Assembly (NCBI RefSeq): GCF_021869535.1
Contig: NW_026262604.1
Location: forward strand, 24,924,001 to 24,988,000
Length of the DNA: 64,000 nucleotides
Source of the DNA: Mytilus californianus
Lineage: Eukaryota
Direction: 5' to 3'
Positions 800 to 59,705 of this stretch are shown in pieces. Numbering within the stretch: the first letter of the stretch is position 1; every line of letters begins with the position of its first letter. The position numbers and the translations under genes are program-made. The notes beneath the pieces are model-generated. The model saw only the letters and a list, made by a program, of their open reading frames with translations. It searched no databases and was not told the origin of the DNA.

Positions 800-879
800 T
801 TGCAATAATTTGTCTAGACTGTAGAGGTTTACCTCAGCCATACGACTGTACAATTGTTACTGAGTGTAGTACAAACGAG
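800..879 (+). CDS. Gene A exon a, LU1 N-terminal part: AIICLDCRGLPQPYDCTIVTECSTNE
   Basis: ttatttcag|...|gtatta, phase 1-0, 80 nt like B 21665-21744, CxxC start typical of LU domains. Confidence 0.9.
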
Positions 880-3800
880 GTATTATGATATGTTTTTTTT
901 TTCATCAAATACTGTAAAAATTAAAAGCAGAACATTATAAATGTCATGCATCCGAAGCGCTTTCATTGATTTACCTTCATTAGGAACGCTCAAAGCCGAA
1001 TATTTGAAAGCCAAGGATGAATAAAAACAATAAAGTCAAATCTTTCTAAGGTCAACTTTGCCTGCGGGATTCATCTTTGAACTGATTTACAGCTTTACTT
1101 TTTCTCAACGACCATTGGTTCCTTTTGATAACATTTTCTATCGATAATCATGCAGATCAATAATCTTTGTCATTTCAGTCTCTGTGTAATTGAGGTCATT
1201 GTTTTAATTTATATGCATTACAAATGCGTGAAACCCATCTTCTATTCGAATTTTAAATACAGAATTAAAATTATTACCGTGTTTGTACTTTCATAAACAA
1301 AACAACATGTGCCAAATGGAGAAGATCTGTTTACCCTTGCTGAGAACATCCCCGGTTTTTGGTGGAGTTTGTGTTGCTTAGTCGTTAGTTTTATACGTAA
1401 TGTTTTGTAGGCTGTTGTTTGTCTATTGTTTGTCTTTTGTTTGTTTTTTGTTTGTTTATTTGCCATGGCATTGTCAGTCCGTTTACTACTATAAATTTGG
1501 TATATTCCGCCTGATGATTCTTCTAAAACAAAAATGATGATTTGAATCCTATCACAATATGTTATATTTTAAGTCAATTGAAATTTTGATGGTTTAATAT
1601 AATGCTTAATACGTCTGTCAACAATGTACATATATTCTGGTATACCGTTATTTCTCCGCACGTTCGTCTCGTGTTAACATGTCGCGCACCAATTTGCGTT
1701 TGTCTAGTTCGATCTCCTACTATCTTATGGAAATTATAAAGAAAGGGTCAGCGGGTCGGTATTCTTTTGATGATATTTACTTTGTTAACAGAAGACGAGT
1801 AGAATTATAATTTAAAAAGTATCTTACCAATTTTCGTGAGCGCGACAAACATAAGGGTCAATAATTATTTATATGTTAACTAAGTCAAGTTACCAATAAG
1901 TGATTTACTTACTTTTTTACCAAGTTATTCAGTAAGGTTTCTGGAGGTCTGTGTACTATTTCACGATTTTCAATTTTATTTTTCTGATGTTAAAAAATGC
2001 TCAGATGATGATTGGCGAGGACGAGCGTATCAAGCCCTCGTGGTCTTGCTGTTTGTAAAAATGGATTATTTTATTGAAAATTTAATTATGCCAGATTCTT
2101 TGTGTATCATGGACAAACTTAAATGTTTATTTACAAAGGATTAACATATATTTGTTAAAAGGTTTTAAAAAAATAATAAAACTATACTCCTCAACATAAC
2201 AATATGTAATTTAGTGTAACAAAGATAATAAACCAGAAGGTTCAATGTAAATCTACGCAAAAAAAATATTTAAAATGTATTTTTGCAATTTTGGAATTTT
2301 TTTAGTTTTATTATTAAAATATATGTTGCTAATCTAAACTTACTCAGTATATATTGGAAACCTGGGCACTTTTTTCAAAGGTGAGTGAATGAATTTTTAT
2401 CAACCACAAATAATTTCACATCGGTAGTTATAATTTTTATTGCACAGAAATTCAATGTCATTACAGTACAATAATCGTCTATATAGTTATTACCTGTATG
2501 AACTTTTGTACAAAAAATGACTCAACTTTTACAATTTCATATGCAAACTATTTATAAAAAATTGACAACTAATAATTTGCTGTTATGAAACACTTTTACA
2601 GAGAAAAGGGTGATAAAAATCATTAAACAATTTGGCTTGTAAGTTGATTTAACATGATTTTCAGTACTTAAATGAGTATGTTACACATCATTAACATGTC
2701 TGTGATAAAAGTTTGGGTAAAAACCTAGGGCTACTATGACAACGTTTGACGATTAAGATATTGAAACTTACATGTACGTATAACAATCTATAGCTTCCAA
2801 CTTTTAGTCTGTAACCGTTTCAGGTCTGTTATATAGAGAGATGTGAAACCAGTAACGGACTAAAATCATGGCATTTATACAATGTTGGCTGCAAATCACT
2901 CAATGTAAGTAACCGTTCACCAATGTCAGCTTGGATGTATGTTTATAAGATAGATTTCAGGGACTGTTTTTCTTTCATTTATATTTTCTATTGTTCCCTT
3001 AGGTGTCATCTTTCCCTTTTGTTATATATCATAATGAAATGGTGATTCCCTTAATTATAGGTAACCGTGTTTCATTATAGGATGATTTATTTTATGTCGT
3101 AAATGATTTATCAAGAAGGTTAACATGCAGTGTAAGTCATTTAAACAGAAATACAACGAAACAAAACACATTTAAGAGGTCAATATATGGTCTTCATCAA
3201 AAGGCAACTGTTGTCAAGCTCTGAATTGCCCTGAATCTAGAAATTGTATCAATAGTTTCATCGGCGACAACAAGATATGCACTTAACACTTTTGACCTAA
3301 ATACATACTTTGGCGGCTTTGCTAGCCCAAAAATTTTTTTTCATTTCTTTCAGTGTAATAAAAAGGGTTTATAGAACAATGTAAAATAACAATCAGTTCA
3401 GAAGAAGCAAGTAAATAAATTACATCAAAACAAAAATTCAGAAACACAGCTGGTACAAGCAAACTACAAATAGAAATAACTACATTAAGAATACTGGTAG
3501 CATTAAAAGCATTTAAAAAATGCTTTACCCGATGAAGTGTTTTGACTTTTCATGTCGTTAGATTTCTATCTTTTTTTATTCATTATTTTTAATATCTAAG
3601 TTTTGCAGCTCATCAGGTCCACTTTTACCAGTAGTCGGCAAACGGAGTGCCAGGAAACGCATTGATAGGACAATATGTCATGAATGCTGTAATGACAGGA
3701 ATATCTGTAATTTGGAAGGACATTGTGGTTCTGCAAGTATGCTATTCTTCTAAAATATTTAATTGTTATCGAATCCAAAAATAATATACAAATGTGGACA

Positions 3801-6800
3801 TTCTGTAATAATGAAAAAATGCATATGCAGGTTAGATAAATATCTAATACTTACAGGAGAAGGATAAGGTAGAGCTTAATTCATCCTCAATTTTTTTCGT
3901 TTCTTATTGTTGATTATCTGTATGATTCAAACCCGAATGGCTGACTTGTTAATAAAAATATGTTCTTCATAGAACGTATCCATCCGGCAGTAACAACCAT
4001 GCTCAACAGACGCGTCTATTTGGCTATGCGGGATGTAGAAACTCGCAACCACTGCCATGCGGAATGGGGCGTCAAGTTGGATGTCTCGTGTAAGAAAGTG
4101 CCACGCACAATGTACACAAGAAATCCTTGTAACAACTCTTTGAGGGGTAAGTTTGTGGTCTGTTGCAAAGCGAAATTACCGTCTCTATATAACATACCTT
4201 ATCTTTTCTGTGACTCAATTTTCAAAACCTACCTTTTGTATAATTTGTAAGATTGTTGTCTTCAATATGTACGAAATAGTTGTCACTGGGCGTAAAGCAA
4301 CCAACACACAATTAGTTAATCATTTAATGTGTATAGGAATAACTGTATGATTGTTAATAATTATTTTAAGTCTGTTGTGTTTTTTTTTTATTTAATGCAT
4401 GTTTGCACAGTAATTCCAATTATTGTCACATTAACCTTTAATGTTTGTTTTGATTGTTCACCCAATTCTGTGAATATAACAAAACAATAAACGTCTGTCA
4501 TACAAATGGCAGGTTTAGCTAGGTATAAAACCAGGTTTATTCCACCATGCTCTTCGGAAAATGTCAGTACAAATGCAGAAATATGACAGTTGTTTTTCAC
4601 TCTTTCCGTTGGTTGATAGCAATTGATTTTCTCAGTTTTTATAGAGTTTCCCTTTTTGATCATTTTCCCTTGGAGAACCAGATTTTTGTTATACTTTATC
4701 TTAATTCATTGACGCTTTTTTCCCCATAGTACCTTTGATCGATCGACTGGCTGTTATCTGCTTAACGTTAATGTTTTTAGAAAATAAGAGCATGATGGAT
4801 AGTAACATTAGTTTTCATTGCAACAGGCCACATAGGGATACAACAAATAGTTATTGCAAAGGTTTTCAACGTGTGAAGACGGAAAACCATCCTTTCACCG
4901 CACGTGCTTGAGTGTTCATACATCCCGCAAGCCTAATAAACGCGCCTCTTTAATTGCTATAGCATACCTTTTATAAGTTTTATTTTTTTTATTCGAGCGT
5001 GAGTCTTTTGTAGACGAAACGCGCGTCTGGCATACACAATTTAATCCTGGTATCTATGATGAGATATATACCTCCTCAATTGGCACTAGAAGGTGTGAAT
5101 ATGCTCGAAATTGGTCAGACCATGATTGATAGTATTTAAACCCCTCGGCATTAAATCTTAATTACTAAAATATAAGAAGATGTTGTATAATTGCCAATAA
5201 GACAACTCCTCACCAGAGACCAACTAACGTAGAAGTCAGTAACTTTATGTCACCGTTTCTATGAAGAGTTATGTTGACGAAAAACGCGTCTGGCGTATTA
5301 CATTATAAGCCTGGTATGATGAGTTTTTTCTACCTAAGGCTATACAACAATTAACGGTAAGTCTATAGTCTTTATTTAGACAATTAATACATTATTACAC
5401 ATGCTTTAGATTTTACGAAGCCGTTTGGTTCGACTTTATGCTATGACTGTCCTTTCAGTAGATATCCAAACTCTTGTAACCATTTGACCTTATGTGATAG
5501 AGATTCGGTGAGTTTTTTTGCTAAATATTGGCCCTAAGTTCCCATAAGGGAACAATCTATACAGTAGCCAATAAACAAACAAGATTTAAATAATAGTCTT
5601 TTGACTGTAATTTTTCAGTTGATAATCAATGTAATTGTACTTAAACAGGAAGTCTTAATTATACTTTGTTGATTATACTATCAAGGTCTTTTTGGTGTTT
5701 ACGAAAATAAACATCTATCTTTTCAGTAAACACTGATTAATATATTTGTTATGTCTTTTCCGTTTATACCTCTAACTTTACAGTATTACACTGATTAATA
5801 TTTTTGTTACGTCTTTTCTGTTTAGACATCTAACTTTATAGTATATACTGATTGATATATTTGTTACGTCTTTTCCGTTTAGACATCTAACTTTTCAGAA
5901 CACATTGGCCATTTTGAGATTATCTATTCTTAAAAAGTGTATGGTATCTTTTATTGATATCTATAAGTTTGGACTACTACTGCTTAAATACTGTACTATT
6001 GACTTTTACTCAACATTTTGTTCTTTTTGTGACAATGCGGAATTATCATATCCAATACCTTTGTTTGCATCTGTTCTTTGATAATAAAAATTCTAGCTGT
6101 TACGCGTTTAATGAAAGAGCATTGTATTGTTTAATTCAGTAACAACCGATAGACTTCCTGTAGGATGAATCATGTGTTATGACTGCCCTCTGGCAGTTGA
6201 TGCTGATGAAGGCAATCATATTTCACTATGTGACCGGGATTCGGTAATGTCTGGGAATAACAATAAAAAATTAGTTTCGAGAAACGTTTTGTTTTTCGTT
6301 GTTTAATTACTGAAAGTCACACAACTGATAATTTAATTCAGCATTTCGCTACGTAGAGTTTTGCATCTTATAACGATAAACACTAGAAAATATCAAATGT
6401 AGATGTGTTTTTATTTCTTGCACTATTGTGTCAATGATGAGTCTTAGAAAAGAGAAGCAAGAGATACCAAAGGGACATTCAAACTTGTAGGTCGAAAACG
6501 AACTGTCAATGCCATGGCAAGCAAAAACGAAAAATTACCAAAAGACAAACAACAGTCTACAAAACACAACATAGAAAAGAATAGCACGAACCTCATCAAA
6601 AACCGAAAGTAATCTCAGGTGATCCGAAATATAAAGCAGATCATGCTCCATATGTGGCACCTTGGGTGATGCTCATGTAAGTACAGATTTGGTGATATGT
6701 GTGATCAGGTAGGTCACATTTTAGGAAAAGAGGACTGGATTGTAAATATGACAATTGGAACATGTAAGTCGACATCTGTGAAATAGATATTAAGTATATT

Positions 6801-9800
6801 TTTTATAGGTATACACTAATTTTGTCTCTGGTGGAAAGTTGTTTTCTTGTGTTATAATTCATTCATTATGGTAATAGTTATACACAGCCTCTTTTGAAGT
6901 CACAGGTGTACACCGCATCTATGAAAGTCATAAGTATACACCAAATTTTCAAGAAGTACGTCATCTCTTATAATCCACGTATATGCAATGTATGCATGAA
7001 CGACAGACGTACAGATAAATAGTCAGATGCAAAACAAAACACCCATTAGACTTCTTTTTCAAAATTGTAAAACAAGTACAACATTAATCTAAGAGATGAA
7101 AGAAATCTTAAAATATAAAAATAAGAGCGCACAAAAGGCTTAAACAAATATTTAGGTATGTAGAATTATGAGTATGTTTAAGTAATCATACCCCTTGTTC
7201 TTAGTCTAAACTTAATAATTTGCCTTTTGTAATATCACAGGCATGCTCTATAAAACAAACACGAAATCTGCTTGGTGAACCTCGTTGGACACATGGTTGT
7301 TCAGAGAAATCGGTATGTTGCATATAGTAAGATTTCAAGGCAACTATTGAAAAAAGGACAGATATGGTAGCGGTGTATCAATTCATGACACAAAATCACT
7401 ACGCGTACATAAAACACGTTAATGTGTGTAGATATATGTACATAACTTGGAATGCATTTATTTGTTTACAAAACAAAGCCAATCTAGTCATGGTTTGTTA
7501 ACGTGACCAGTTATAATAGTAGTTCTAGTTTTCTCTTCCTTTTAAGAGCATGAAAATATTATTTTCTTTTGTTAGACGTCTATGTTTATATATACAAATA
7601 TTTAAAATGCATTCGAGTTATTTGAATTTCCTTCAAACAGTTGAAATTCTCCTGCGTTTCATGAAATAAATATAATTCAACATTCATTTGAAATTTGATT
7701 TTCAAAATCGACTGAAATAATTATTGTTCAAAATTAATACAATACACTATGTACAAAAATAAGTAAAAAAAATGTAAGAAACAATTGTCAATTGACGTTT
7801 AGCAAACATCAATCAATCAATCAATTATAATTATATCAACAGAGCAACACTTTTTTGTGTACTTTTTGATCATCACTGTTGATACAAAATCTTTATAAAT
7901 GCTCTACATTCCTTAAACATACACTAAGACCAAGGCGTCAATTGACTCCTCTGTACTCTGATTTTCACCAAGAACCGCAACAATGATAATTATTGTGGAA
8001 TATTGTTTATTAATAATGTAAATTGTTTATAAATAATGTAAATTGTTTATAAATAATGTAAATTGCTTATAACAGTAAGCCAATAAAATGCAACTTATCA
8101 CGCTCTACGTCAACAATTGATTATTCAGCATTGTGCGCGAAGTAATCCACAGGGAACCTGTTCAATTTGTTGTGACTCGGAATTATGTAACCGTAACTGT
8201 ACCATTCAATCAACAATAGCTCCTCCAACTACAACGACAATTGTACCAACAACGCTTATTCCTCGTAAGTTGTCCAATTAACACGTTTAATAGGTCTTTT
8301 TATAATATATGTTCATGATGTTATAAAATAGGTCATTTTAAATTCATTGATTTAATCATTTGTTGATTGTGTACTGCTAAATGTGGCGTCAGCGATGATG
8401 GAATAGCTGGTAGAGAGTTGGCATTAAATAAAGATTAAATAATACAAAAGGCCGTCAATTAAACTAGCTTTTAAGGCATATTGCTTACACATGTATCAAT
8501 AACACTCCATATTAGAATTACATCAACATAAAAAGACTCTACAGATACACAACATATTTAAAGTTTCAAAATAATTAAAATGATATTACTTTCTGAACTG
8601 GAGTATTTACAGACAAAGCATGTATACACGAGATTGTACGGTACACCTTAATCATTAAACTATCAACTTATCGTAGTCTTTTTTAAAGCTTGTTATTTTG
8701 AGACAGAGGAGCGAACATCATTAATACGTCTTTGAATACTATATGTCATAAAATATAGCATATTGTAAGTTGTCCACCTAAGGATGTTTTTTTTTCGAAT
8801 GATGGTTTGACAATATCTAGGCAAACTTTATCTGTTTTTTCAATTATCTAGAAACGTATTGCTGTTCCTGGTGTCAAGCAATCTAAAATATGATCGCCTT
8901 TTTGATGACATCCCAATAAAAAAATCACAGGAAAGTAATCATAGCTTGCGTCATTGATTATGAAAAAGCAATCAACTGTTAGGGAAGTGTATGAATCGGA
9001 TAGTAATTAGAGAAATAATTTTAATTGTTAATATTATTGTCATTTTTATATGGTTTTCTTTCTTTTTTAGAGACAGCTCCAATTGTACATCAAGTTGTTA
9101 TCAATCCAACAAATATAAGATATGGCGATACAGTGACGATCCAATGCGTTGCCACCGGAAATCCTAGTCCGACAATAGATTTCCTAACACGGGTAAACAC
9201 GTTTTGGCTTTCATCTCAATTTTACATATTAGATATACGCATAGAAGAAACGGAAACCATATATACATTATATTATATTTTTTTCTTCAAAATATTGTAG
9301 GGTGCCTCGGTGACCGAGTATTCTAAGTAGTCTAACTACTATATCACTAGCCTGTCAACACTGAGGTTGTGAGTTCGAATCAAGCACGGGGTAGGTGCAC
9401 TCGGCTTCAATCTTGATTGAATAGAATTGTGAGTTTTCCTACCGAAGGTCGGTGGTTCTCTCTAAATATTGTAGAAGTATTTTCAGAACACGGCAAATTT
9501 ATTATTGTATTAAAATGAAATGTTTGTGTAATGATTGGTAGAATATTGGAATGATAAATAATCATTTCCATTTCAGAATCGTAAGACAACTCGGTTTTAT
9601 TTATAGAAGCACACAAAATATGTTACGATTAACATAAATCATTGATATGGTCATAATTATAAATGTCAACAAAACTTTAAATTTTCCGAAATACTAAGGA
9701 CTTTTTACCCTAGGCATCGATAATCGTAGAGGTAATTGGCAAAACCCTTTTGGACCTTTGGGTCCCTTTTTTCTTTTATAACTTCGTAATTTATTTAGCC

Positions 9801-11255
9801 AATTGACTTTTTTATTCGAGCGTCACTGATGAGTCTTTTGTAGACTAATCGCTCGTCTGGCGTATTAAACATTCATCTATGAATGTACTGATAACGTTCT
9901 TAATAGTGGAAATTCAAACATGACGTGATGTTATTGTTATTTTGAGGGAACAGTTTGGGTCAGACCATTAAATATTGATGGCCCAATTGTTTAGGTTGAT
10001 ACTTTTTGTCAGATGACATGTATGAATTCACTCATATAAACCTGGTTGCATGTTCTCATTGGTACTTCCGTTGAGTTTCGAATGATCTTTGGACCTACAT
10101 GGTTTTGATTTGTTATTGTTGTCATGCTGCTGTACTATTCGTGTAATTGTTTTTAAGCACATGTGGATCATGCTCATTTTCAAAACTTTTTGTAGTCTTA
10201 GTTAGTAAGTACTAGTGTTACATGTACATTATACTATTGTTACATGTACATTGTACTAGTGTTACATGTACATTATACTATTGTTACATGTACATTGTAC
10301 TAGTGTTACATGTACATTATACTAGTGCAATATGTACTTCTGCTATTTTAACATGTACATTGTACTAGTGTTACATGTACATTCTGTTAGTGTTACCTGT
10401 ATATTATACTAGTGTTACACCTACATTGTACTACTGTTACATGTACATTGTACAAGTGTTACATGTACATTGTACTAGTGTTATACATGCACATTGTGAT
10501 AGTGTAACCTGTACATTATACTAGTGTTACATGTACATTGTACTAGTGTTACATGTAAATTGTACTAGTGTTACATGTACATTATACTAGTGTAACATGT
10601 ACATTGTACTAGTGTTACATGTACATTGTACTAGTGCTACATGTTTATTGTACTATTTTAACGTGTTCATCGTACTGTAGCGTTAACAAGCCAGGGTATT
10701 TGTCCTTGAACATATTGCCATCTTTTTCGCTGTTAAAATTACATAGATAAGCAATTTTTCCTGCTAAGTGCACAGTGAAAGTTTTAATGAGTTCTTTACA
10801 AATGAATGAACTAAACATATAGATTAAGGATACTAGAGACATCAAAATAGCTCCAAATAAAAATTATCGTGGCATTTACAGTTTCTACTAATGGCGTGAC
10901 TTTTTTTCATTTTTGGGTGCGAACAATAAAATTACGCTTAGTCCTTGATATTGTAAAACGGTTAATTTCATGATAATGATGACATTTGATTGCATTTTTA
11001 GCCCCATGAGACTTATTAATCAAGTAAATGTCTAAATTTATAGTATCAAACTCTCGTGATTACTATTTAAACATGTAATGAATTTATATTATATATTTTC
11101 AGGGTGGCTCATTAGGCACAAATATACTAGTAGATCCGCATACACATGTTCTTACAATACGGAAATTTTTACCTTATGATGACGGAGATTACAGATGTAT
11201 AGCTGCAAATTCATTGGGTGATGATCATAAAGATTTCCACTTACAAGGACACTAA
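800..11255 (+). CDS. Gene A (5'-incomplete), spliced: join(800..879,2824..2904,3601..3736,[optional 3973..4146],5410..5507,7241..7312,8129..8264,9071..9192,11103..11255). Predicted secreted LU-like x2 + Thr-rich linker + I-set-like Ig protein
   Basis: All exons have AG/GT boundaries and compatible phases, giving one open frame to TAA at 11253-11255. The Cys pattern and exon sizes match paralogs B and C, and AATAAA lies at 11277-11282. The signal-peptide exon was not identified. Confidence 0.85.
2824..2904 (+). CDS. Gene A exon b, LU1 middle: VCYIERCETSNGLKSWHLYNVGCKSLN
   Basis: tttcag|...|gtaagt, phase 0-0, CY...VGC motif shared with B and C, one extra Cys. Confidence 0.9.
3601..3736 (+). 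CDS. Gene A exon c, LU1 C-terminal part: FCSSSGPLLPVVGKRSARKRIDRTICHECCNDRNICNLEGHCGSA
   Basis: AAG acceptor after a long pyrimidine tract, donor gtatgc, phase 0-1, CC-x5-CN motif. Confidence 0.88.
3973..4146 (+). CDS. Candidate gene-A-specific extra exon, 58 codons: RIHPAVTTMLNRRVYLAMRDVETRNHCHAEWGVKLDVSCKKVPRTMYTRNPCNNSLR
   Basis: ttcttcatag|...|gtaagt, phase 1-1, open only in the required frame, GC-richer than the flanking intron; no recognisable domain. Confidence 0.45.
5410..5507 (+). CDS. Gene A exon d (intact copy), LU2 N-terminal part: FTKPFGSTLCYDCPFSRYPNSCNHLTLCDRDS
   Basis: gctttag|...|gtgagt, phase 1-0, 98 nt, same length as B 25578-25675, all 4 Cys present. Confidence 0.9.
5711..5898. 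repeat. 57-58 bp tandem repeat, about 3.3 units
   Basis: Unit starts at 5711, 5768, 5826 and 5883. Confidence 0.85.
6140..6243 (+). pseudogene. Second, defective copy of exon d in gene A: TTDRLPVG*IMCYDCPLAVDADEGNHISLCDRDS
   Basis: Intact aattcag/gtaatg splice sites and the same ...LCDRDS end as 5410-5507, but in-frame TGA at 6166-6168 and Cys replaced by Gly (GGC 6211-6213). Confidence 0.8.
6451..6793 (-). mobile_element. Degenerate Penelope-like terminal fragment
   Basis: Similar to 545-778, 41627-42095 and 56488-56967. Confidence 0.65.
7241..7312 (+). CDS. Gene A exon e, LU2 middle: ACSIKQTRNLLGEPRWTHGCSEKS
   Basis: atcacag|...|gtatgt, 72 nt, phase 0-0, same size in B and C. Confidence 0.9.
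8129..8264 (+). CDS. Gene A exon f, LU2 C-terminal part + Thr/Pro linker: HCARSNPQGTCSICCDSELCNRNCTIQSTIAPPTTTTIVPTTLIP
   Basis: ttattcag|...|gtaagt, phase 0-1, CC-x4-CN motif. Confidence 0.9.
9071..9192 (+). CDS. Gene A Ig exon 1: TAPIVHQVVINPTNIRYGDTVTIQCVATGNPSPTIDFLTR
   Basis: tcttttttag|...|gtaaac, 122 nt, I-set B-strand Cys followed by GNPxP. Confidence 0.92.
9300..9462 (+). mobile_element. tRNA-derived SINE, 3'-truncated (V-domain-like)
   Basis: A-box-like TGACCGAGT, B-box GAGTTCGAATC at 9371-9381, ggtcggtggttctctc core; a related copy is at 63095-63304. Confidence 0.65.
10209..10655. repeat. 22-bp minisatellite TGTACTAGTGTTACATGTACAT, about 20 units
   Basis: Directly visible periodicity. 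Confidence 0.92.
11103..11255 (+). CDS. Gene A Ig exon 2 (terminal): GGSLGTNILVDPHTHVLTIRKFLPYDDGDYRCIAANSLGDDHKDFHLQGH*
   Basis: ttttcag acceptor, L-T-I and D-x-G-x-Y-x-C-x-A-x-N-x-x-G I-set motifs, stop then AATAAA. Confidence 0.92.
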   Translation, partial: GGSLGTNILVDPHTHVLTIRKFLPYDDGDYRCIAANSLGDDHKDFHLQGH

Positions 11256-11345
11256 CACTTTAATTGGTTGTTTGAAAATAAATGAACTGATATGTAATTA
11301 CCTATGTAAATTAGTTCGAATTTTTTCTCTTATTATCATAAAAAA

Positions 11346-12545: not shown

Positions 12546-12609
12546 GATAAGACACTTTTGCAGTTCATTGTAAATTAAGATTTGCAGCGTAATGACTAAT
12601 GAAGGTAGG

Positions 12610-15249: not shown

Positions 15250-15394
15250 TAAGTATTGCAGCTTTAATGTGTTTTAGTAAGCCAGACATCATGCTCACAA
15301 TTGTGTGAAATAGACGACATTGAATCTAATCTTATGTCATGTACTTAGTACATGTAATACTAACCGGATTGATAACGTTTACATTCCCGCTGAT

Positions 15395-15404
15395 ATGGCT
15401 AAAA
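15395..15404 (+). CDS. Gene B first coding exon (ATG GCT AAA A)
   Basis: ATG followed by a strong gtaagt donor in phase 1; joins 18026 to complete a signal peptide. Confidence 0.6.
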
Positions 15405-45584: not shown

Positions 45585-45667
45585 ACGCAGGACAACTTTG
45601 TTTGAACTGTAAAGCAGTACCCCAGCCTTTAGATTGTACTGATGTTGTGGAATGTGGGACTCACGAG
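45585..45667 (+). CDS. Gene C exon a: AGQLCLNCKAVPQPLDCTDVVECGTHE
   Basis: atatag| (or alternative gcag| 6 nt downstream, same phase) ...|gtaggc. Confidence 0.9.
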
Positions 45668-48600: not shown

Positions 48601-51600
48601 TGTATATCGTGATATTACTCTTATTGAAAAGTACGATGTTTCAATAATCATTATCTGATTACAGCAATGCATGGCACATCCTGGTAGGTCTGTTGGCGAT
48701 GTTAATGTATGCACGAAATGCTGCAACAATACAGACGTTTGTAATTTGGATCAGCTATGTAGTTCAGAAGGTAGCGGCAATTTTTCAGCAACTACGAGTA
48801 CTCTCACGTCTGTACTTTGTGTCTTTCGATTTTTTGTTTGTTGTTTTTGAGCATTGTACCGTTCTTATGACTCAAGCCCTTTTAAACTGATTTATATAGT
48901 TTATTTTTATGTTGTGCTGTTACACCGCTGTCCCAGATTAGAGAGAGGGTTGAGCGCCAGCAAAATGTATGGTACATAAATGAGGCCGTTAGTTTTCTAG
49001 TTTAAATTATTTTACATTTTTAATTTCGGGAATTTTTTTAAATTGCTATGCAGTATGGGTTTTGCTCATTGTTGAAGTTAGTATGGTGAACTATAGTTAC
49101 AAACTTCTACATCATTTGGTCTCCGGAGGCGACTTGTCTCATTGGCCATCATACCACATCTTCTTATTTTACATCAACTTGTGAGCATAACACAAGCTAA
49201 AAACTAAGAGGTATTCTGAATAGTACCAGAGTTTTCCGAGGTCACGACGTCAAGTTTGTCAATGTTCTTTTAAACGAGTACATGTTTCATTAAGGTGCAT
49301 ATATATATAACTATTAGGTAAAATTAATATAACCTGTTGTAGCGCTTTATTGCAGTGTTTGTTCCAAAGCCAGGACACGTTCTTTGTTTCTCTTGTCCTT
49401 ATAGTTTAGAACAACCAGCTCAGTGTCACAGGATAACACTTTGTGGACAAGACCAGGTAAAGTTTAATTTTTCTTTAACTCATAAATGATGGTCTTGCAT
49501 CTGGTTTATATATTTTTTTTTTATCGACCAGTGATTGGCTAGCGACAAAACCCGGTAAACTTTTATTCTTCTATAATTCATGTATGATGATTTTGCATCT
49601 TGTTTACTTTTTATCTTTATCGACCAGTGATTGTTCTATTAAGGTAGATAGGGTGTCTTCCTCCATCTTGGATTTTGAAATACCAGAAAATAATTGGTCT
49701 AGACCTTTAATAAAATGTGCAAATTTTGAAAGTAGTGGGTAATTCATGTGTAAGAATTTTCATTCTAATATAGAAAATGACATGTTTTATTATATTTATG
49801 GTTGTATTTTACAAAAAACAGAATACTTTTGTTTGATTCAATTTTTTCCAACTTTGCCACATAAGGGGAGGCAACACAAATGTAAGGGCAGATAATTCAG
49901 ATAAAGTTACTTTTACAATAGAATGTGTTAGGAATTTATCTATTTTATTATGTAGCAAGAAAACGGGCACGGTGACCCCATTTTTTCTTTTTCTTATCTG
50001 AAAGTATAATATTAGAGCTATCTCCTTATATTTTATCTCAAATATCTGTGGTGTAGTTTTCGTTTTATGGCAGAAAATTGCGTTTTCCATGCATAATCTA
50101 TACAAAATCTGTCAATTTTGCACAACCTGTAGCGTGAAAATAAGCCCCGTGACCCATTCTTTTTATTATTTTTTTCAAAAAAGCATGATATAAACTACAT
50201 TTTGGCAAATTATTAAAAAATTCTATGGATTATAATTTAGACACCCCATCTACCTTAACTACATATAAATATATTTTAATTTTATAAGCGATGACCTTGA
50301 TCCTTGGTAACGATAGTCTTAGAGATTTATTTTAATGAAAAGTTACCTATACGTTTGATAGCAAGTACCCGCTATTTGAAATGCTTGTCTAAAAGGTGAA
50401 AGCAAACGGACATTCAAACTAATAAATCGAAAATAAACTGAGAACGCCATGGCAAGAAAGAAAAAGACCAAAAGACAAACTCCAGTATAGAAAACACAAC
50501 ATATAACAAACAAAAGACTGAGCAACAGGAACCCAATCAAAACCCGAGGCGATCTCAGGTGCTTCGGAAGGGTAGGCAGATCCTGCTCCACATGTGGCAC
50601 CCGTCATGTTACTCATCTAACCGTTACGGTAAGCTATGTCATCTAAACCGGACTATTCCTAGCCATTTTGTCTTTGCTGTTATTAAAAATTCCAAGTACA
50701 TAGCAAAACGTAACAAGCCCGATTTCTTAAGTTTTAGCTTTGACGCCAACTATTTATGATTATTTATTTATGATATGACACATTGTTTATGTGTTTACTA
50801 CTTGTTGTATGTCATCAATGTTTTGATGTTTCTAGCAATGTTCGATCAATACAACCAGAAATTTACTTAATGAGAAGAGATATAAAATGGGCTGTTCAGC
50901 CAACAAGGTTAGTGTTGGTCTTTTTGAAAAATTAAAGTTGAGAATGGAAATGGGGAATATGTCAAAGAGACAACAAACCGACCAAAGAGCAGACAACAGC
51001 CGAAGGCCACCAATGGGTCTTCAACGCAGCGAGAAAATCCCGCACCCAGAGGTGGTCCTCAGCTGGCCCCTAAATAAAATTGTGTACTAGTTCAGTAAAA
51101 TTGGACGTCACACTAAACTCCAAAACATATAAATGAACTAAAATACCTTACCGAAATATGCGTCTTATATACATTATATTCTATTAATACTGAAAATGTA
51201 CAGAAATCATTTATATAGATGAAATCGTTACCTTGAATACGTTTCATTTATATCATTTCTTTCTTTCTTTTGTATGAGCTTCCTTTCTAAGGAACACCCC
51301 TTATCATATAAAAAAAATATTTACACAGATAATTAAGAGAACAAATCTCTTAATTTTAAAAAGAATTTAAGTCATAAATTTAAAAATAGTAGACGTGCTC
51401 TGTATAATTTGTGAAAAAAAATAAATAAAACATGAGAGTAGGCATGTATGTTCAGAGGGGTCGAAATAATGTACAAGTATGAAATCTTTATACCTAAAAA
51501 ATAATTTCCATAAGCAGAAACATATTTTACTCTACGCTGGTTTGTCTACGTCAATTACGCGTTTTATGTGTAATCTGGATCCCTGCATTGCATGACTCAC

Positions 51601-54600
51601 AAGGTCATTGTGATCGTTTGACATTTTCTAGCATCATTGTATTTCTTAGGTTCACAACTCAACCGTTTTACAGAAATATATCATTTATTGAAATTATCTT
51701 AGCCGTAATATGGATATTATACCAATAGACTTTTTTTCATATTACCGACTTTTGATTCCGGAGTTTATTATATTTTTTCGACAGGTTACCTTCTCTAATG
51801 TTGGACATCCTGGTACTCGGTCAGGTAAATTCAAGCTTACAATCGGTACAATTAAGAGGAGGAATTTTACTGTTTTATGTTTTTATACACAACAAAATCA
51901 TCGGGAAACAGTTAACTTTCCCCAAATTGCACCAATTATATGTTTGCTTTTACTTCTTTTGGTTGCTCTTACCTGACCGAATACCAGGATGTCCTACCAC
52001 AGATTAGGCAACCTGTCGCAAAATTATATAATCCGGAGTCAAAAGTCGGTAATATTACGATATAAAAAAATGTCAACACACAACACGGTTGACTCCAAAT
52101 TAGAATTAACAAGAATTAACTAACATTAAGAAATTCACGTTTTTAAGAATGATTGCACAGGTTACTTATATGTGTATAACAGCCTCTGACGTCATACTCT
52201 GTTCAAATACTTCCGCATGATTTACCTTATATCCAATCGACATAAAAAAAAATGTCAACACATAATTTACACGGTGGACTCCAAACTTACTAGTTCTTTC
52301 AAAGTATTTGTTTTTGAAAACGACGTTATATTGCGTCATTTGTGCGAAATGTGTGAACTACAGAATGTCAAATACTGTACATATATCGCACATATTACGA
52401 AATATAACTTCGTCCTCAAAAACAAATACTTTGAAAGAACTATTAAGTTTGGAGTCAACGTGTTATGTGTTGACTTTTTTTATATCGATTGGATATAACG
52501 TTAATCATGTGGAAGTATTTGAACAGAGGATGACGTCAGAGGCCGTTATGCACATATAAAATACCTGTGAAATCATTGTTAAAAACGTGAATTTCTTAGT
52601 GTTAGTTAATTCTTCATGGGGGTATTCTTATTTTGAGTCATCTTAGGAAGAAGAAGAAAAACTAATAGTCATTTACCTTTTTTCAAAACTTCACGTTTTA
52701 TGAATTCATTAGTCTTTACGTAGTTCTTTTGTAACGTAAATAAGTTATAATTTCTAGTATTCAAATGAGGTGCCGATTAAACATTCACATGGTTGCCAAA
52801 AAAAAAATGAAAACAACACGTCATTAGTTTTATGCTTCCGAAGCGCCTTACCTGATAACCCTTCATCAATAATGCTCAAAGCCGAATATTTTAAGATGTT
52901 TTTACTGACACAGTCAGTCATAATTTCGGTTTGCGACCTATTTTAAAGGATGCTTAACTATGATAACAGCATGCATGATGTCACAAGCCTTTACTCTGTT
53001 TGGACGAAATTACGGAAGTGAACAAAAACCCACAGAGAAAGATATCTGCTACAATAAAAGGAAAACAATACGGACATCAAATCAAACTTAGAAATGAAAT
53101 TATCCAGATAAATAAAAATAAATTCAGGTAAAGGAGGTGTCATTATCACCACTGTCAAATTGTTTGGATCTTGTATGCTTAGGCTTTAATACATGAGCAG
53201 GTAAATATCATTGACAGGTTCATTAGATCTACCAGGTCAATTAGGCTATTAATAGCTCGAGTGCTATAAATATATCTTATTGACTTTGTGTACTTGCACG
53301 TGCAGTCTGAAACTTACAAGGTGTAATAATAATCTTAAAGAGTACAAAATATTCAATCTAATTTAGATATATATCTCTGATTTCGTTATACTTATATATA
53401 CGACCATGCGAGTAATATAGATTTGATTTTATAGTATGACAGGTTACAAAAAAAATTGTATTTTTATTTAGTGAAGAAAATGTTTACTTTTACACTGCCA
53501 AAAGATGCTTTGATATTTTATTGAAAAGAAAATGTTTATTATATTCTTAAAATGTATATTTTTACAACACGTCATTAGTTTTATGCTTCCGAAGCGCCTT
53601 ACCTGATAACCCTTCATCAATAATGCTCAAAGCCGAATATTTTAAGATGTTTTTACTGACACAGTCAGTCATAATTTCGGTTTGCGACCTATTTTAAAGG
53701 ATGCTTAACTATGATAACAGCATGCATGATGTCACAAGCCTTTACTCTGTTTGGACGAAATTACGGAAGTGAACAAAAACCCACAGAGAAAGATATCTGC
53801 TACAATAAAAGGAAAACAATACGGACATCAAATCAAACTTAGAAATGAAATTATCCAGATAAATAAAAATAAATTCAGGTAAAGGAGGTGTCATTATCAC
53901 CACTGTCAAATTGTTTGGATCTTGTATGCTTAGGCTTTAATACATGAGTAGGTAAATATCATTGACAGGTTCATTAGATCTACCAGGTCAATTAGGCTAT
54001 TAATAGCTCGAGTGCTATAAATATATCTTATTGACTTTGTGTACTTGCACGTGCAGTCTGAAACTTACAAGGTGTAATAATAATCTTAAAGAGTACAAAA
54101 TATTCAATCTAATTTAGATATATATCTCTGATTTCGTTATACTTATATATACGACCATGCGAGTAATATAGATTTGATTTTATAGTATGACAGGTTACAA
54201 AAAAAATTGTATTTTTATTTAGTGATGAAAATGTTTACTTTTACACTGCCAAAAGATGCTTTGATATTTTATTGAAAAGAAAATGTTTATTATATTCTTA
54301 AAATGTATATTTTTATTATTTTTCATGTTTTAATTTTAGTGTGTACATATATATATATATATAATCATTGTATAGTCTCTCATAACTCTTTTTAGAGTGG
54401 CTCTTGTTTATATGTGAAGTAAGGCCGTTCGGTGACCTATAGTTGTTAATTTCTGTGTCATTTGGTCTCTTGTGGAGATTTGTCTCATTGACAATCATAC
54501 CACATCTTCTTATTTTTATGTTACAATAATGCGTAAATATTTTGCAAGATTGAAAAAATATTATACTTGAAAAAGAATGTCAAACTCATATACCGTAAAT

Positions 54601-57600
54601 TTAATTACTTGTAAAAAGCTGTATTAAATAGATCATCTCTCTTTGACGTCCGTTCGTCCCCGATATACTCACCGAAATAGGTTGTATATCTGACTGTTAA
54701 TGTTGAGCTGGACATATAGTTATAATTGACATTTTTGCATGGTGCTAAACTGTTTCAAGTTTGTTAATCATTACAGATTGTAACCTACTATCTTATGTTT
54801 GTGTCTATTTCACAGCTATATATACTTATTTATCTCTGGAAAATACTTATTTATATATGAATATACATTTAGTTAAGTATCATGCAGTATTTATTTTAAT
54901 TCTTTAGAGAAAAGCGAATATACTATGACTTTTTAGCTATGATAAAAAAAACTAATAAAGATTCATGGTTTGTTTTAAACTCGATGCTCACATCTGAATG
55001 CGTTAGATATCTTTTTTTACAGATATTACTTGTTTTTAATCATAATGATATTTTATATACTGGCATATACTGAAATAACAATTTATCGTAAATTAACCTA
55101 TATGTACAACTCTTTGATACTTTTTTCTAGGCGTGTCAGAAATCGGCAAATTCCTATTGCTGTAACAATCAACTTTGTAACAGACACATTCCATGTAAGA
55201 TAGTTTGTTAGAATCTGAATTAATATCACGATTTTATGAAAATAAAAAAAATGTGGTATGTTTGCCACCGAGACAAGTTTCCAGATTGTGGAATAATGTA
55301 AGACTATTTGGCCTTTTGGTCATGGTGCGGCCTTCCCTTTTCGATGTAATTAAATGTTCATCTCCTCAATCATAACCCTTTCCGGCATGTTGCATTGTGT
55401 TCCGATTATCCATGTGTATTTAAAAAAAAGTATTTTTGTTATCAGCATTGGCAAATCCTCAATCAGCAGGTACAGGACACTAGAATATAGATTGATTGAA
55501 AGATTGGTGTTTGCTTAGTTAATGATCGTTTACATAATAAAAGAGGGTGTATATGAGTGTTAACAGAATAGAGAATAACGGACAAAAAATATAAAGAATA
55601 GAGGAAAATAGACCAAAATAATAAAGAATAAAGAATAATAGGCAAAAAGTATAAAGAATAGATAAAAATGGCGTAAAAAATAAAGAATACAGAAACGAAG
55701 GAACCACCCCCTTTCAAGACCCTCATATAAGGTTGCTGGTATTTAAATAGAAAAAACAAAGGATATGGAGTATCCATTCATGACACAAAATCAGAACGTC
55801 CACAGCAAAAAATACACAAAAAGCAAAAGAACAGGGCTTTGTTCATATTCATTTTGAACGAATTAAACATTAAAACAATAAGGGGTCCCGGATGATTAGC
55901 AGAGTATTTTAACCCGCCACTGCAACAAGGGGTAATTAAAAATAGTGGCACGAAAAAAAGATATATGATTAAAGCAAATATTTAGCAAAATAAAATATCA
56001 AAACAGTAATTATACTACAATTCTTCAAAATCAACCAGCAGAAACGTTTCATTTTTGCGGGTTTTGCTGTGTTGAATCTTCAGTTTTTTTATTAATCGTC
56101 TTGTGAACTAATATATGTCTGTTTGACGTTTTGGCCATGGTGCTACCTTCTTTTTTGATTTCACCAAATCATCATCCCGCTTCAACAATCATAACCCCTT
56201 TCTGTATAGTGCATTGTGTTCCGATTATCCATAGGTTTCCATTCAAGACTCTTTACTTAGATATATGCTGCAATATAAACAAATGTACGAATAATTTAAC
56301 TTGCTACACAAAATGTATTTTTTAAGGTGTCTTTATGTTTGTGTTCAGTGATTAGTGATGAAAAAAAAATAGTTGCCATTAAATTTTCAAAAGTTTTAAG
56401 TAGAAAATTGAAATATTATTTATTTCATGTACATGTATTATCTTCCTTGTAAGTTTAATATAGTAATTAGCAATCTTTTAAATCGAGAAAGTTATGATTT
56501 CCTTGATAGAGGGTTGCTGCTCACAAGGAAGCTATTAAACCAAGAGTTCCAAACGGTGAAGTTGAAATCATCCCTTCGTAAATTTTACGGACGCCACCAC
56601 GAGTTGGTAGACCGTTATGGAATATCCGTTTCACAGATGATAGCGGATATGTTCCTAATGTCGTAGCTACAATCCTGTTCCCTGTTCACGAATGTGACCT
56701 ACCGGATTAGACTATTTACCGGGTTTGTACTAACATGAGCAACACTACGGGTGTCACATGTGGAGCAGGATCTGCTTACCCTTCCGGAGCACCTGAGATC
56801 ACCCCCAGTTTTTGGTGGGGTTCGTGTTGCTTAGTCTTTAGTTTTCTATGTTGTGTTTTATGTACTATTGTTTGTCTGTTTGTCTTTTTCTTTTTTAGCC
56901 ATGGCTTTGTCAATTTATTTTCGATTTATGAGTTTGAATGTCCCTCTGGTATCTTTCGCCCCTCTTCTATAGCTCCTTTTTTAGCGCATGTACTATTCAA
57001 GTTGAGCATTTGTATCTGTAATCTCGTTTTCGCTCTCTGATTCAAATATTTATAAAAAAAAATAATTACATTTGGTATTTTCTTTAAGGGTGTTTGCTCC
57101 TGTTGTTTCAAAATAACAGATTTTTTAAAAGACTGTTAAAAATTTTTTGGTACTTCATAGATAAAACTAGAGGAATCCGAATAGCAGACAAAATAATCAA
57201 AAACAAGTGTAGTGAACATCCTTAATACTTTTTATTTTAATTTAACATTAATATAGCAAAACCAATTATCGTAAATCCAACCTCCAATCAGCATATACAA
57301 GTCAAGTACCATACAGACGTACGGATAACGTGTATAGTCACTGGATATCCGGAACCCACCATTGGATATGAGTTCAAGGTATCCGCACATTTAATAATAT
57401 CCTATCGTCTATAGATTTCATTGATTCTGTGACCTGGCTTACTGATCATTTAAAAATCAGAAGATGTGGTATGATTGCCAATGGGACAACTCTCCACCAG
57501 AGACCAAATCATCTAGAAGTTAGTTATATGTAATACACATGTTTAACAACATATATCGTCCTAAACATTACCCGCTCTCGTCCCATATAGAATTTACTGA

Positions 57601-59705
57601 CCAGTATATACAACATTGGGCCACTGACGGCTTGTGTACAGATAATGTATACTATTCGTCATAAGTTTGACCTTGACAACCAAAAAAGCTCATTGAAGCA
57701 TTTTTTTTTCAACAGCAGCACTACGAAAAAAAGCGAATATCAATAAAAGGTAATATCGAGTACACCTCAATTAATCAGGAGATAAACAAATTCTAAAAAA
57801 AACTAAAGGAAGGCTTGATTTTTTAATCACCATTGGCAAATAGCAGGTAAGGAATACCAGAATATCGACTGATCGACTAACTGTTGTTAGCCTTACGACC
57901 AGTGGCAAATGTTTCGTGCATGTTCAGGTCGAGAATAGATTAACAATACATACAATAAGTATGTCCTGCAAAAGGGGGTCAACCGGGATGATTAGCGGGA
58001 AATTTTGATTCCCTCTGGAAAATAGGTCTATTGGATACAGATAGAAATTAAGCCTTGCAACAGGCCCTTTTAAAAATTAAAAAAGTTGTAACAAGGGTTC
58101 TTAACGTGGAAAGAGTGTGCTATTCTCTCTACACGAGGCATCTAATTTAGCGTTCCAAATTTGACCGGACGTGACTGCGAAAGACGCCCGGAGAAGACCC
58201 ATGAGATAACCTAATGTTGATACTCTAGTCAACCTTTTGGGTTTCGAAAATCAAAGTATGGAAAATTACAGTAAATCGGACAAAAAAAAGATAGATCAAA
58301 CCAAACGTGACGTGTACTATATCTGCCTAATACCGAAGCTTTGTTTTGATTTTATGTTGGTGTGAAATTCGTACAAGAAAGATTTTATAAAAATGTCTGC
58401 TGCATGGAACTACAAATTACGTCGAATTCTAATTAAGATTTGTTAATCCAATTGTAATTATTTAGTTCATATTCAATTCAGAACTAATCAAACATTAAAA
58501 TAAAAAGGAAGTTTTGGGTTGGTACTCCAGAATATGTTTAAACCCGCCACTGAAAAAGGGGGTATTTATGATAGTGGCACACACAAATTGGAAAGATAAA
58601 AGCAGATAGTTGGCCAAATAAATTGCAAAACAGTTATTGAAGACCGTACTGTGACCTATAATGGTTTACTTTTATAAATTTTGACTTGGATGGAGAGTTG
58701 TCTCATTGGCACTCATACCACATCTTCTTATATCTAATTATACTACAATTCTTCAAATTTGGTTGATATTGCTTTTAGTTTCGTTAATCTATTACTGAAC
58801 TGTGAATAAAAGGGGGTATGGGTATACGCCATTAAAACATCAACCAAACCACATCAAAAACGATTTTAACCAAAAGCTATTTTTGCTGTCATTAATGTAT
58901 CATTTAACACATATTTTTGGGAAATCAAAACATGACAAATCCTTCACGGAATCAATATGGTAAATGTTTTACCCACATCTACATCATTCACATGCCATCT
59001 TGTAGCCAAATATCTTTAGAGGTATGACTCAAGAACATTTAAATATAAGCCAAGTTATCAAAATGGTGCTTTTTTCGTTGTTCTTGAAGTTTTATTCCTA
59101 AATACACGGGGTTTGGTGGATTGGTATTTAACGTTCAGTGGAAAATATAACATGCATATGAGCACAAAAATATTTTAAGGCAATATGATTATTGAAACCC
59201 TGCTTTGTACTAGACCGACACGCTGCGCTGTATTTTTAAGTTGCTAGTCATGAAGGCAACAGTCCGACGGACTACCCGGACACACCATTCTGACTCCGAG
59301 CCGACAAGTCTTTTCTATAATCCCTTATAATAAGAAGCGGTGCATACCGGGTTTGACCCGGTCTTGGATTGAACATACGACATCCGACACTCGAGGCGAG
59401 CACAGGGCTGCGTTATATTTGGAACATTTTTGTAATTGTCTTCAGCATTTTTCTATCAAAAACCTTGACGAACAAAATGGAGCGAAAGCGCTGAATATGA
59501 ACTATGACCTAAAAGCGTATTTATTCTTTTTCAATTTGTTTTACAGCATACAAACCCTTTTCCAACTAATTTTGGAAAAGAGAACAACAATACATTGGTG
59601 ATTTCTAATTATAATAAAGAAAATGACGGCCATTACCACTGTTATGCTGTGAATTCCTTAGGAACAGCGAAAGTAGACTTTACCATTAAAGGGACTGACA
59701 CATGA
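45585..59705 (+). CDS. Gene C (5'-incomplete), spliced: join(45585..45667,47414..47485,48665..48770,49356..49456,50836..50907,55131..55194,57257..57378,59547..59705). LU-like x2 + I-set-like Ig, no Thr linker, predicted secreted
   Basis: One open frame across eight GT-AG exons with the same phase pattern as A and B, TGA at 59703-59705 and ATTAAA at 59799-59804. The signal exon(s) were not confidently found. Confidence 0.86.
47414..47485 (+). CDS. Gene C exon b: ACYTQRFITYDGITLFNVGCQDHD
   Basis: atttcag|...|gtatgt, 72 nt. Confidence 0.92.
48665..48770 (+). CDS. Gene C exon c: QCMAHPGRSVGDVNVCTKCCNNTDVCNLDQLCSSE
   Basis: attacag|...|gtagcg, phase 0-1. Confidence 0.9.
49356..49456 (+). CDS. 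Gene C exon d: FVPKPGHVLCFSCPYSLEQPAQCHRITLCGQDQ
   Basis: ttattgcag|...|gtaaag, phase 1-0. Confidence 0.92.
49643..50254. mobile_element. 612-bp MITE with GGTAGATAGGGTGTCT TIRs and TTAA TSD (Kolobok-like signature)
   Basis: ttaa|ggtagatagggtgtct ... agacaccccatctacc|ttaa. Confidence 0.85.
50395..50620 (-). mobile_element. Penelope-like terminal fragment
   Basis: Same family as 35325-35518. Confidence 0.7.
50836..50907 (+). CDS. Gene C exon e: QCSINTTRNLLNEKRYKMGCSANK
   Basis: tttctag|...|gttagt, 72 nt. Confidence 0.92.
51740..52054. mobile_element. ~315-bp MITE with ~88-bp TIRs and TA termini/TSD
   Basis: tattaccgacttttgattccgga...ggtcaggtaa / ttacctgacc...tccggagtcaaaagtcggtaata. Confidence 0.82.
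52111..52614. mobile_element. ~500-bp foldback element (arms 52111-52347 and 52386-52614, ~40-bp spacer)
   Basis: Long imperfect inverted repeat aligned by eye. Confidence 0.82.
52813..54314. repeat. 751-bp near-perfect tandem duplication (52813-53563, 53564-54314)
   Basis: Two substitutions seen: C53198/T53949 and A53475/T54226. Confidence 0.93.
55131..55194 (+). CDS. Gene C exon f (short): ACQKSANSYCCNNQLCNRHIP
   Basis: ttttttctag|...|gtaaga, phase 0-1, CC-x4-CN motif. Confidence 0.9.
56488..56967 (+). mobile_element. Penelope-like retroelement 3' fragment (probably Naiad-type, RT at the C-terminus)
   Basis: YDFLDRGLLLTRKLLNQEFQTVKLKSSLRKFYGRHHELVDRYGISVSQM (track ORF 56427..56666) followed by the abundant terminal region. 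Confidence 0.85.
57088..57221. mobile_element. Internally deleted 134-bp copy of the TTAA MITE, inverted relative to 23029-23418
   Basis: ttaa|gggtgtttgctcc ... gtgaacatcc|ttaa. Confidence 0.75.
57257..57378 (+). CDS. Gene C Ig exon 1: KPIIVNPTSNQHIQVKYHTDVRITCIVTGYPEPTIGYEFK
   Basis: aatatag|...|gtatcc, 122 nt like A and B, C-x3-G-x-P-x-P motif. Confidence 0.9.
59112..59403 (-). mobile_element. Degenerate tRNA-derived SINE (Meta/MESC-domain-like)
   Basis: gctttgtactagacc.acacgctg...ccgagcc..caagtc...gtttgacccg...cactcgaggcgagcac pattern, recognised from memory of mollusc SINEs. Confidence 0.55.
59547..59705 (+). CDS. Gene C Ig exon 2 (terminal): HTNPFPTNFGKENNNTLVISNYNKENDGHYHCYAVNSLGTAKVDFTIKGTDT*
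   Basis: ttttacag acceptor, D-x-G-x-Y-x-C-x-A-x-N-x-x-G motif. Confidence 0.92.
   Translation, partial: HTNPFPTNFGKENNNTLVISNYNKENDGHYHCYAVNSLGTAKVDFTIKGTDT

Follow-up and report, generated by a model that had tools for sequence, protein, structure and literature searches.

Tandem LU-LU-Ig genes in Mytilus californianus

A 64,000-nucleotide stretch of the Mytilus californianus genome (NCBI RefSeq assembly GCF_021869535.1, contig NW_026262604.1, forward-strand positions 24,924,001 to 24,988,000; the whole stretch is referred to here as the window, and positions are numbered from its first base) contains three colinear plus-strand paralogues, genes A, B, and C. Each of them probably encodes a signal peptide, two cysteine-rich domains of the LU type (the three-finger domains of Ly6 and uPAR), a hinge (absent in C), and one I-set immunoglobulin (Ig) domain, in a soluble product that lacks a membrane anchor. 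The window has a G+C content of 31-35% and no N, and its organisation is eukaryotic. Its three genes belong to an array of five tandem LU-LU-Ig genes over ~112 kb, in the order Z, A, B, C, D, of which Z lies colinear and directly upstream of the window and D directly downstream; both have an eight-exon layout identical to that of A, B, and C. An earlier interpretation made from the bases alone (the sequence-only reading) had described a family of three, a count that holds within the window and falls short of the array.

Exons were sought as stop-free plus-strand segments with 'CC-x4/5-CN' and Ig-like motifs, which fell into three colinear groups, and splice sites were set by hand and by comparison of the paralogues. 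Counted from the first LU exon, each gene has eight exons, the last of which contains the stop codon: three for the first LU domain (LU1), three for the second (LU2), and two for the I-set Ig domain. Two small 5' signal-peptide exons bring the number to ten. AG and GT flank all internal exons of the three genes, and the phases from the first LU exon onward (1-0-0-1-0-0-1-0-stop) are identical in A, B, and C. Paralogous exons within the window match at tblastn E-values of 1e-5 to 1e-20, which excludes chance, and open frames and every structural Cys are retained throughout (all 8-10 exons). The sequence-only reading is borne out in these respects: every exon that it described was found in place with the same phases, and the composition of two Cys-rich LU domains and one C-terminal Ig domain was recovered through the Cys framework, a profile search of the PDB, AlphaFold and VIA-align, and Pfam I-set. 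The 301 amino acids that it gave for the B protein are also obtained once the two 5' exons are added. The C protein is predicted to have 275 amino acids, and proteins of the family ~275-310.

All exons given below are on the plus strand. In gene A, LU1 is encoded at 800-879 (the exon with the CxxC start, which opens at the first base of the described genes, enters in phase 1 and leaves in phase 0, and matches B at a tblastn E of 5e-9 and C at 1e-8), 2824-2904, and 3601-3736 (the GKR loop and the CCxxxxCN end). LU2 follows at 5410-5507, 7241-7312, and 8129-8264, the last of these exons including a Thr/Pro-rich linker. The Ig exons, both matched by Pfam I-set, lie at 9071-9192 (I-set positions 6-33) and 11103-11255 (positions 51-89 and the stop codon). 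Gene A also holds a pseudo-exon at 6157-6243, a second copy of LU2 exon 1 with an in-frame stop. This copy is nearer to the corresponding exon of gene Z than to the functional exon of gene A itself, which hints at a possible exon duplication or exchange within the array.

In gene B, LU1 is encoded at 21665-21744, 21931-22002, and 23476-23593, and LU2 at 25578-25675, 27641-27712, and 32074-32206, the last with a Ser/Thr-rich linker. The Ig exons at 37878-37999 and 39001-39156 (with the stop codon) are matched both by Pfam I-set and by the transcript contig L041 described below. In gene C the LU1 exons lie at 45585-45667, 47414-47485, and 48665-48770, and those of LU2 at 49356-49456, 50836-50907, and 55131-55194, the last of these without a mucin-like linker. 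Its Ig exons, again Pfam I-set matches, are at 57257-57378 and 59547-59705, the final base being the last of the stop codon.

Predicted signal peptide and C-terminal end

The N-termini of orthologues were used to find a hydrophobic exon upstream of each gene. A strong polypyrimidine-AG acceptor precedes each of these exons, and the ATG must therefore sit in a separate short upstream exon. In gene B, the coding part of exon 1 (15395-15404) consists of the ATG and 7 bases before a strong GTAAGT donor, and exon 2 (18026-18070) encodes the hydrophobic core. In gene C, the coding part of exon 1 (43448-43468; ATG and 6 codons) matches the N-terminus of the orthologue P0002, and the hydrophobic core is in exon 2 (44641-44668). 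The hydrophobic exon of gene A lies ~600 bases upstream of the window, with a candidate ATG exon ~8.7 kb upstream of the window. The N-termini of B and C, which are homologous to those of their orthologues, consist of Met, 1-2 charged or polar residues, a hydrophobic core of 10-11 residues, and Thr/Val-x-Ala before the first LU residue. A signal peptide within a single exon was also considered; scans for an ATG, a hydrophobic core, and a phase-1 donor together gave no consistent candidate. Models with a frameshifted 5' exon in gene C and with 5' exons lacking a start codon in A and B were dropped in favour of the strong acceptors and, in B and C, the separate short ATG exon.

No hydrophobic glycosylphosphatidylinositol (GPI)-attachment or transmembrane tail is present at the C-terminus of A, B, C, or any orthologue examined. 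An in-frame stop follows the last Ig strand by 2-6 residues in all paralogues and orthologues, the terminal residues are polar, and in an orthologous transcript the same stop is followed by 3' untranslated sequence, in agreement with the absence of an anchor proposed by the sequence-only reading.

Transcript evidence

L041, a 980-base Mytilus transcript contig from a public run, encodes a 303-amino-acid orthologue of B (76% identical) and aligns colinearly to nine of the ten gene B exons. Its first block (15371-15404) ends exactly at the exon 1 donor, and its last block takes in the stop codon and the 3' untranslated region. The blocks for LU1 exon 3, LU2 exon 1, and LU2 exon 3 share a boundary with the gene B model, and the remaining ends fall within a few bases of it. 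Exon 2 has diverged too far to be aligned, but its length is the same as that of the unaligned gap of 45 bases separating the first block from the second. A complete 319-amino-acid signal-peptide-LU-LU-Ig protein is encoded by three contigs (1.0-2.1 kb) of Argopecten irradians that contain no introns, whereas its gene spans 16 kb of genomic sequence. These contigs are strong evidence that the predicted signal peptide, both LU domains, and the Ig domain are joined in one mRNA in the B orthologue and in the scallop homologue, and they provide indirect evidence for the genes of the window.

Cysteine framework and predicted fold of the LU domains

Both LU domains of A, B, and C, together with those of 26 homologues, share the pattern CxxC ... 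GC ... CCxxxxCN, in keeping with the LU consensus (an N-terminal CxxC, 8-10 Cys, and a C-terminal CCxxxxCN). Most copies have 12 Cys per domain (10-12 overall), which includes one extra pair that makes a sixth disulfide pair. Cysteines are lost in pairs: LU2 of gene C (exon 3, 55131-55194) lacks both of the 'extra' Cys, and LU1 of gene Z lacks the second and third. Such losses fit a disulfide-bonded LU framework from which whole disulfides would have been dropped. In A, B, and C alike, LU1 and LU2 are each flanked by phase-1 introns, as is the Ig domain at its 5' end. This is the arrangement expected under exon shuffling, and phase-1 bounds are usual for LU exons (PMC6600238).

Family, homologue, and structure searches were run with database orthologues standing in for the spliced window proteins, and structures were predicted for P0057 of M. 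coruscus, which is 91% identical to B. In Pfam, single LU exons gave zero matches, as expected for thirds of a domain, and the family relatives P0022, P0030, P0011, and P0014 reach or exceed the UPAR_LY6 or Toxin_TOLIP cut-offs. Whole-protein profile searches of the PDB and whole-model Foldseek searches were swamped by Ig proteins, and both were therefore rerun with only the LU-LU part. The profile built from 26 LU-LU segments then matched GPIHBP1 (twice), PSCA, and SLURP-1 at E-values of 1e-4 to 5e-4, spanning the whole of LU2, and nothing beyond these four LU sequences was returned from the PDB up to an E-value of 10.

For the LU-LU part of P0057, AlphaFold gave a model with a predicted local distance difference test score (pLDDT) of 89 and a predicted template modelling score (pTM) of 0.80. 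With VIA-align, its LU1 aligns with GPIHBP1 over 79 residues (Z 9.2, root-mean-square deviation 2.5 Å) and its LU2 with CD59 over 70 residues (Z 8.5, 2.9 Å). Ranks 1-39 are all three-finger folds, after which the following match falls to Z 3.5. In Foldseek, this LU-LU model is closest to the multi-LU proteins uPAR, TEX101, and C4.4A, and CD177 belongs to the same set of best matches (E 1e-4 to 1e-2). On the orthologue models, the checks on the predicted fold that accompanied the sequence-only reading came out in its favour, with three-finger proteins returned for the LU-LU part and titin M10 and FGFR2 D2 for the Ig part. Taken together, the Pfam scores of distant members, the PDB profile, and the match of the predicted P0057 fold settle the identity of the Cys-rich domains as LU.

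A G-K/R-K/R motif occurs in the long LU1 loop between the seventh and eighth Cys and is kept in 20 of the 26 LU-LU homologues (gene A, 3640-3660; gene B, 23500-23515; columns ~85-90 of alignment A5). This loop is the only low-confidence loop of the models, and the motif makes it a candidate proprotein-convertase or amidation-type processing site.

The Ig domain and the layout of the protein

Pfam I-set is matched in two complementary parts, positions 6-33 of 90 by the first Ig exon and 51-89 by the second. Ig exon 2 on its own scores 27-30 bits against an I-set cut-off of 23.7, and full-length orthologues score 35-39 bits; the conserved Cys pair and the D-x-G-x-Y-x-C motif of I-set domains are both present. 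Foldseek compares the modelled Ig with the single Ig domains of titin M10 and FGFR2 D2 at template modelling (TM) scores of 0.72-0.76. In the full-length orthologue model (pLDDT 88.6, pTM 0.60), the short Ser/Thr/Pro-rich hinge between LU2 and Ig, which has no counterpart in gene C, is predicted to be disordered (pLDDT <50, residues 182-194). The models suggest that LU-LU packs as one compact unit and that the Ig domain is carried on a flexible tether.

Evolution of the array

Each of the three genes has 1:1 orthologues in other Mytilus species: P0052 of M. coruscus (84%) and P0045/P0046 of M. galloprovincialis/edulis (74%) for A, P0057 (91%) and P0056 (76%) for B, and P0002 of M. galloprovincialis (87%) for C. 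The duplications are therefore older than the Mytilus radiation. The LU-LU-Ig architecture is also found in Argopecten, Mizuhopecten, Dreissena (with two Ig domains), and Mya, and Haliotis has proteins with LU and several Ig domains. The LU-LU unit, common to mussels, scallops, Dreissena, and Mya, has thus been long retained, and the description of the family as lineage-specific in the sequence-only reading is contradicted by this distribution as well as by the 1:1 orthologues. Its description as diversifying fares no better. Mean ratios of nonsynonymous to synonymous divergence (dN/dS; Nei-Gojobori) between B and the orthologous transcript are 0.19 for LU1, 0.30 for LU2, and 0.38 for Ig, values which, for the sequences compared, indicate purifying selection on average.

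The same reading had placed variable LU heads on an Ig module. Among A, B, and C, identity is 44-48% for LU1 and 40-50% for LU2, and the Ig domains of A and B are 71% identical. In comparisons with gene C, Ig identity (31-35%) does not exceed that of the LU domains (40-45%); a contrast between variable LU and conserved Ig stands among A, B, and Z only. Between A and B, synonymous divergence (dS) is 0.57 in the Ig exons (9071-11255 versus 37878-39156) and >2 or saturated in the LU exons. Because dS is so much lower in the Ig than in the LU exons, the pattern of 'conserved Ig, variable LU' among A, B, and Z appears to be better explained by homogenisation of the Ig exons than by faster evolution of the LU domains, which suggests gene conversion of the Ig part among these three genes.

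Relatives with other tails and comparison with known systems

Word-based searches found few homologues. The productive search was an exhaustive profile search with six first-LU exons, the query having been picked after a leave-one-out test, and it gave 44 matches at E <=0.001. According to Pfam scans, the LU-LU head precedes C-type lectin domains in Mytilus, Ruditapes, Mactra, and Mercenaria, and in bivalves it is also joined to fibrinogen-related, ShK (Crassostrea virginica), WSC, TSP1, and multi-Ig tails. Database entries for family members are named 'uncharacterized' or 'hypothetical', or carry automatic misnomers (Palladin, HMCN, IGSF9B, hemicentin-like), and the statement that LU-LU-Ig belongs to no named family is upheld. 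Literature searches with accessions, run ids, and 'Ly6 uPAR' or 'three-finger' in combination with mollusc names returned no description of an LU-LU-Ig family. The architecture is new to the literature on LU proteins, and the sequences themselves are already public as uncharacterized entries.

Among known proteins, mollusc FREPs (IgSF and fibrinogen) and C-type lectins are secreted mosaics in which a recognition domain is coupled to a module at the N-terminus, and they form tandem families. The window family shares this secreted mosaic build, and its bivalve LU-LU relatives carry C-type lectin or fibrinogen tails. FREPs, in contrast, have an IgSF head, a fibrinogen tail, and no LU domain, whereas the products of the window genes end in an Ig domain and lack a lectin domain.

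CD59, GPIHBP1, PSCA, SLURP-1, and Lynx include the best structural matches per domain (GPIHBP1 and CD59) and the sole sequence matches in the PDB (GPIHBP1, PSCA, and SLURP-1). The Cys spacing of the window LU domains presumably resembles that of CD59. These proteins are, however, one-domain and mostly GPI-anchored or small secreted forms; none has an Ig domain, and GPIHBP1 adds just an acidic tail. The ectodomains of the TGF-beta, BMP, and activin receptors present the three-finger fold inside a mosaic protein, as is the case here, and are structural matches at Z 6-8.4, but they are single LU-like ectodomains on a transmembrane kinase, without the CCxxxxCN end motif and without Ig.

The proteins uPAR, C4.4A, TEX101, and CD177, like those of the window genes, have LU domains in tandem in one chain; multi-LU proteins are encoded by LU exon sets with phase-1 intron bounds, again as in the window genes (PMC6600238). 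The members of this group are GPI-anchored and contain LU domains only, whereas the window genes lack an anchor and add a mucin-like hinge and a C-terminal I-set Ig domain. Their LU domains also differ from those of the uPAR group in having a sixth disulfide pair (in most copies) and in being split over three exons. A 2019 review considers LU rare in mosaic proteins and 'probably not a bona fide mobile module', on the ground that nearly all LU domains stand singly or are repeated without other domains, the few exceptions being GPIHBP1, SP-10, and the TGF-beta receptors (PMC6600238). The bivalve unit of two LU domains with phase-1 bounds, which is fused to no fewer than six further kinds of extracellular domain, stands in contrast to this view.

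Possible roles and alternative explanations

To our knowledge, every LU domain studied so far (those of CD59, uPAR, GPIHBP1, Lynx/SLURP, and the TGF-beta receptors) acts on a protein partner by way of its finger loops. I-set Ig domains are likewise protein-binding modules. Since both kinds of domain bind proteins, the most economical mechanism would be a two-site bridge or blocker: the products may bind their targets outside the cell, in body fluid or mucus. The LU-LU unit would contact a protein partner through its finger loops, as in other LU proteins, and the tethered Ig domain would offer a second binding or docking surface, a role of bridging or blocking rather than of catalysis. The head shared with lectin-tailed relatives tilts the setting toward humoral or mucosal recognition, and would make LU-LU a common adaptor or effector part more readily than a variable recognition part. 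By analogy with these relatives, a humoral or mucosal (immune) setting for the A, B, and C proteins is possible, with a likelihood somewhat short of even. A wider proposal, which is put forward tentatively and is rather doubtful, is that the bivalve LU-LU pair is a true mobile module that heads a whole superfamily of secreted mosaics yet to be described (with Ig, C-type lectin, fibrinogen, ShK, WSC, and TSP1 tails), serving as an adaptor or effector in humoral defence and possibly activated by a convertase at the LU1 G-K/R-K/R motif, with the window array as one branch.

Several observations count against the assignment of A, B, and C as genes for secreted LU-LU-Ig proteins. The closest orthologues score 17-21 bits, under the Pfam cut-offs for UPAR_LY6 (24.8) and Toxin_TOLIP (21.2); the structure models are of orthologous proteins rather than of the window's own; the signal peptide was called by eye and by homology; and the first exon of gene A is a candidate only. 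About 6% of one M. californianus RNA-seq run and three contig sets, compared with 5350-11320 (the five 3' exons of gene A, for LU2 and Ig), gave no exon reads and no exon joints, and reads of the same sample fell on dispersed repeats only. The mapping of junctions that the sequence-only reading had proposed is thus without gene A reads in this sample, and the joining of LU and Ig exons is seen in the B-orthologue and scallop contigs. Moreover, the product of gene Z (P0055, XP 'uncharacterized protein LOC127721604 [Mytilus californianus]') is the sole M. californianus protein returned by the homologue searches. Because only Z surfaced in this way, genes A-C may be unannotated or poorly annotated in M. 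californianus databases.

The lack of reads on gene A exons in the sampled run, the dead duplicate exon and candidate start exon of this gene, and the solitary database entry for Z could also mean that A, B, and C are decaying or silent relics in M. californianus, and that only some members of the array, such as gene Z, are functional. This is very unlikely, as all three genes keep open frames, canonical splice sites, and all structural Cys, B shows a dN/dS of 0.19-0.38 against its orthologue, 1:1 orthologues are conserved across Mytilus species, and the B orthologue is transcribed; a single run, sampled at 6% and from an unspecified tissue, is weak negative evidence. If the genes are instead functional, their products could be soluble modulators of receptors or ligands in the manner of Lynx and SLURP (acting, e.g., on nicotinic receptors or TGF-beta-type ligands), with a neural or developmental role rather than one in defence. 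Lynx1/2, SLURP-1/2, PSCA, and the BMP and activin receptor ectodomains are indeed among the structural neighbours (Z 6-8.4), SLURP-1 and PSCA are within the four sole PDB sequence matches, and neural adhesion molecules, in which I-set Ig domains are typically found, also lead the Ig matches. Likeness of fold does not indicate function, however, and the same LU-LU head is found on domains that typify secreted proteins with carbohydrate-binding activity, namely C-type lectin and fibrinogen-related domains. A moderately diverged tandem expansion also suits environmental interfaces better than conserved signalling, and a modulator role is on balance unlikely. Least likely of the readings considered is a function at the gamete surface, analogous to that of the vertebrate sperm LU proteins TEX101, Ly6K, and SP-10, in which the divergence of the paralogues would reflect sexual selection. 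TEX101 is among the best two-domain structural matches, and identity between M. californianus orthologues and those of the M. edulis complex is just 74-87%, but mean dN/dS is well under 1 in all three domains and, unlike TEX101 and Ly6K, the products lack a GPI anchor.

Under the preferred reading, in which A, B, and C encode soluble LU-LU-Ig proteins, the family supplies defined soluble proteins that can be expressed to study the action of an LU head tethered to Ig or to a lectin, and it raises the question of membership in the secreted recognition repertoire of bivalves, which is large and still poorly understood. Its value is probably moderate, given that the proteins are already public as uncharacterized entries and that the functional role is drawn from analogy.

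Other genes and repeats

Further LU and Ig genes lie on the same chromosome as the window (C24). An LU-LU-mucin-Ig gene at C24:62,037,000-62,045,700 (minus strand) is the orthologue of P0050 of M. galloprovincialis. The gene at C24:50,709,130-50,746,346 (minus strand), orthologous to P0070, has four LU and about six Ig domains and is duplicated ~90 kb apart. An LU-LU-Ig locus at C24:50,939,075-50,954,044 (plus strand) is partly matched.

Within the window, a dispersed repeat carries open reading frames with common motifs (MSNTTG..., ...WWGSC..., and ...STYEFEC...) at 474-773 (minus), 44601-44864 (minus), 56735-57040 (plus), and elsewhere. At 6350-6750, 8685-8724, 9315-9460, and 9808-9870, fragments of dispersed repeats are covered by accumulations of RNA-seq reads and transcript contigs with identities of 90-99%. 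The last intron of gene A contains a ~66-base minisatellite (10200-10750), which reads as CYMYIVLVLHVHCTSVTCTLY in several frames, and a ~131-base array occupies 20750-21350 in the intron immediately upstream of the first LU exon of gene B. An intron of gene C carries a 751-base direct duplication (53256-53363 and 54007-54114).

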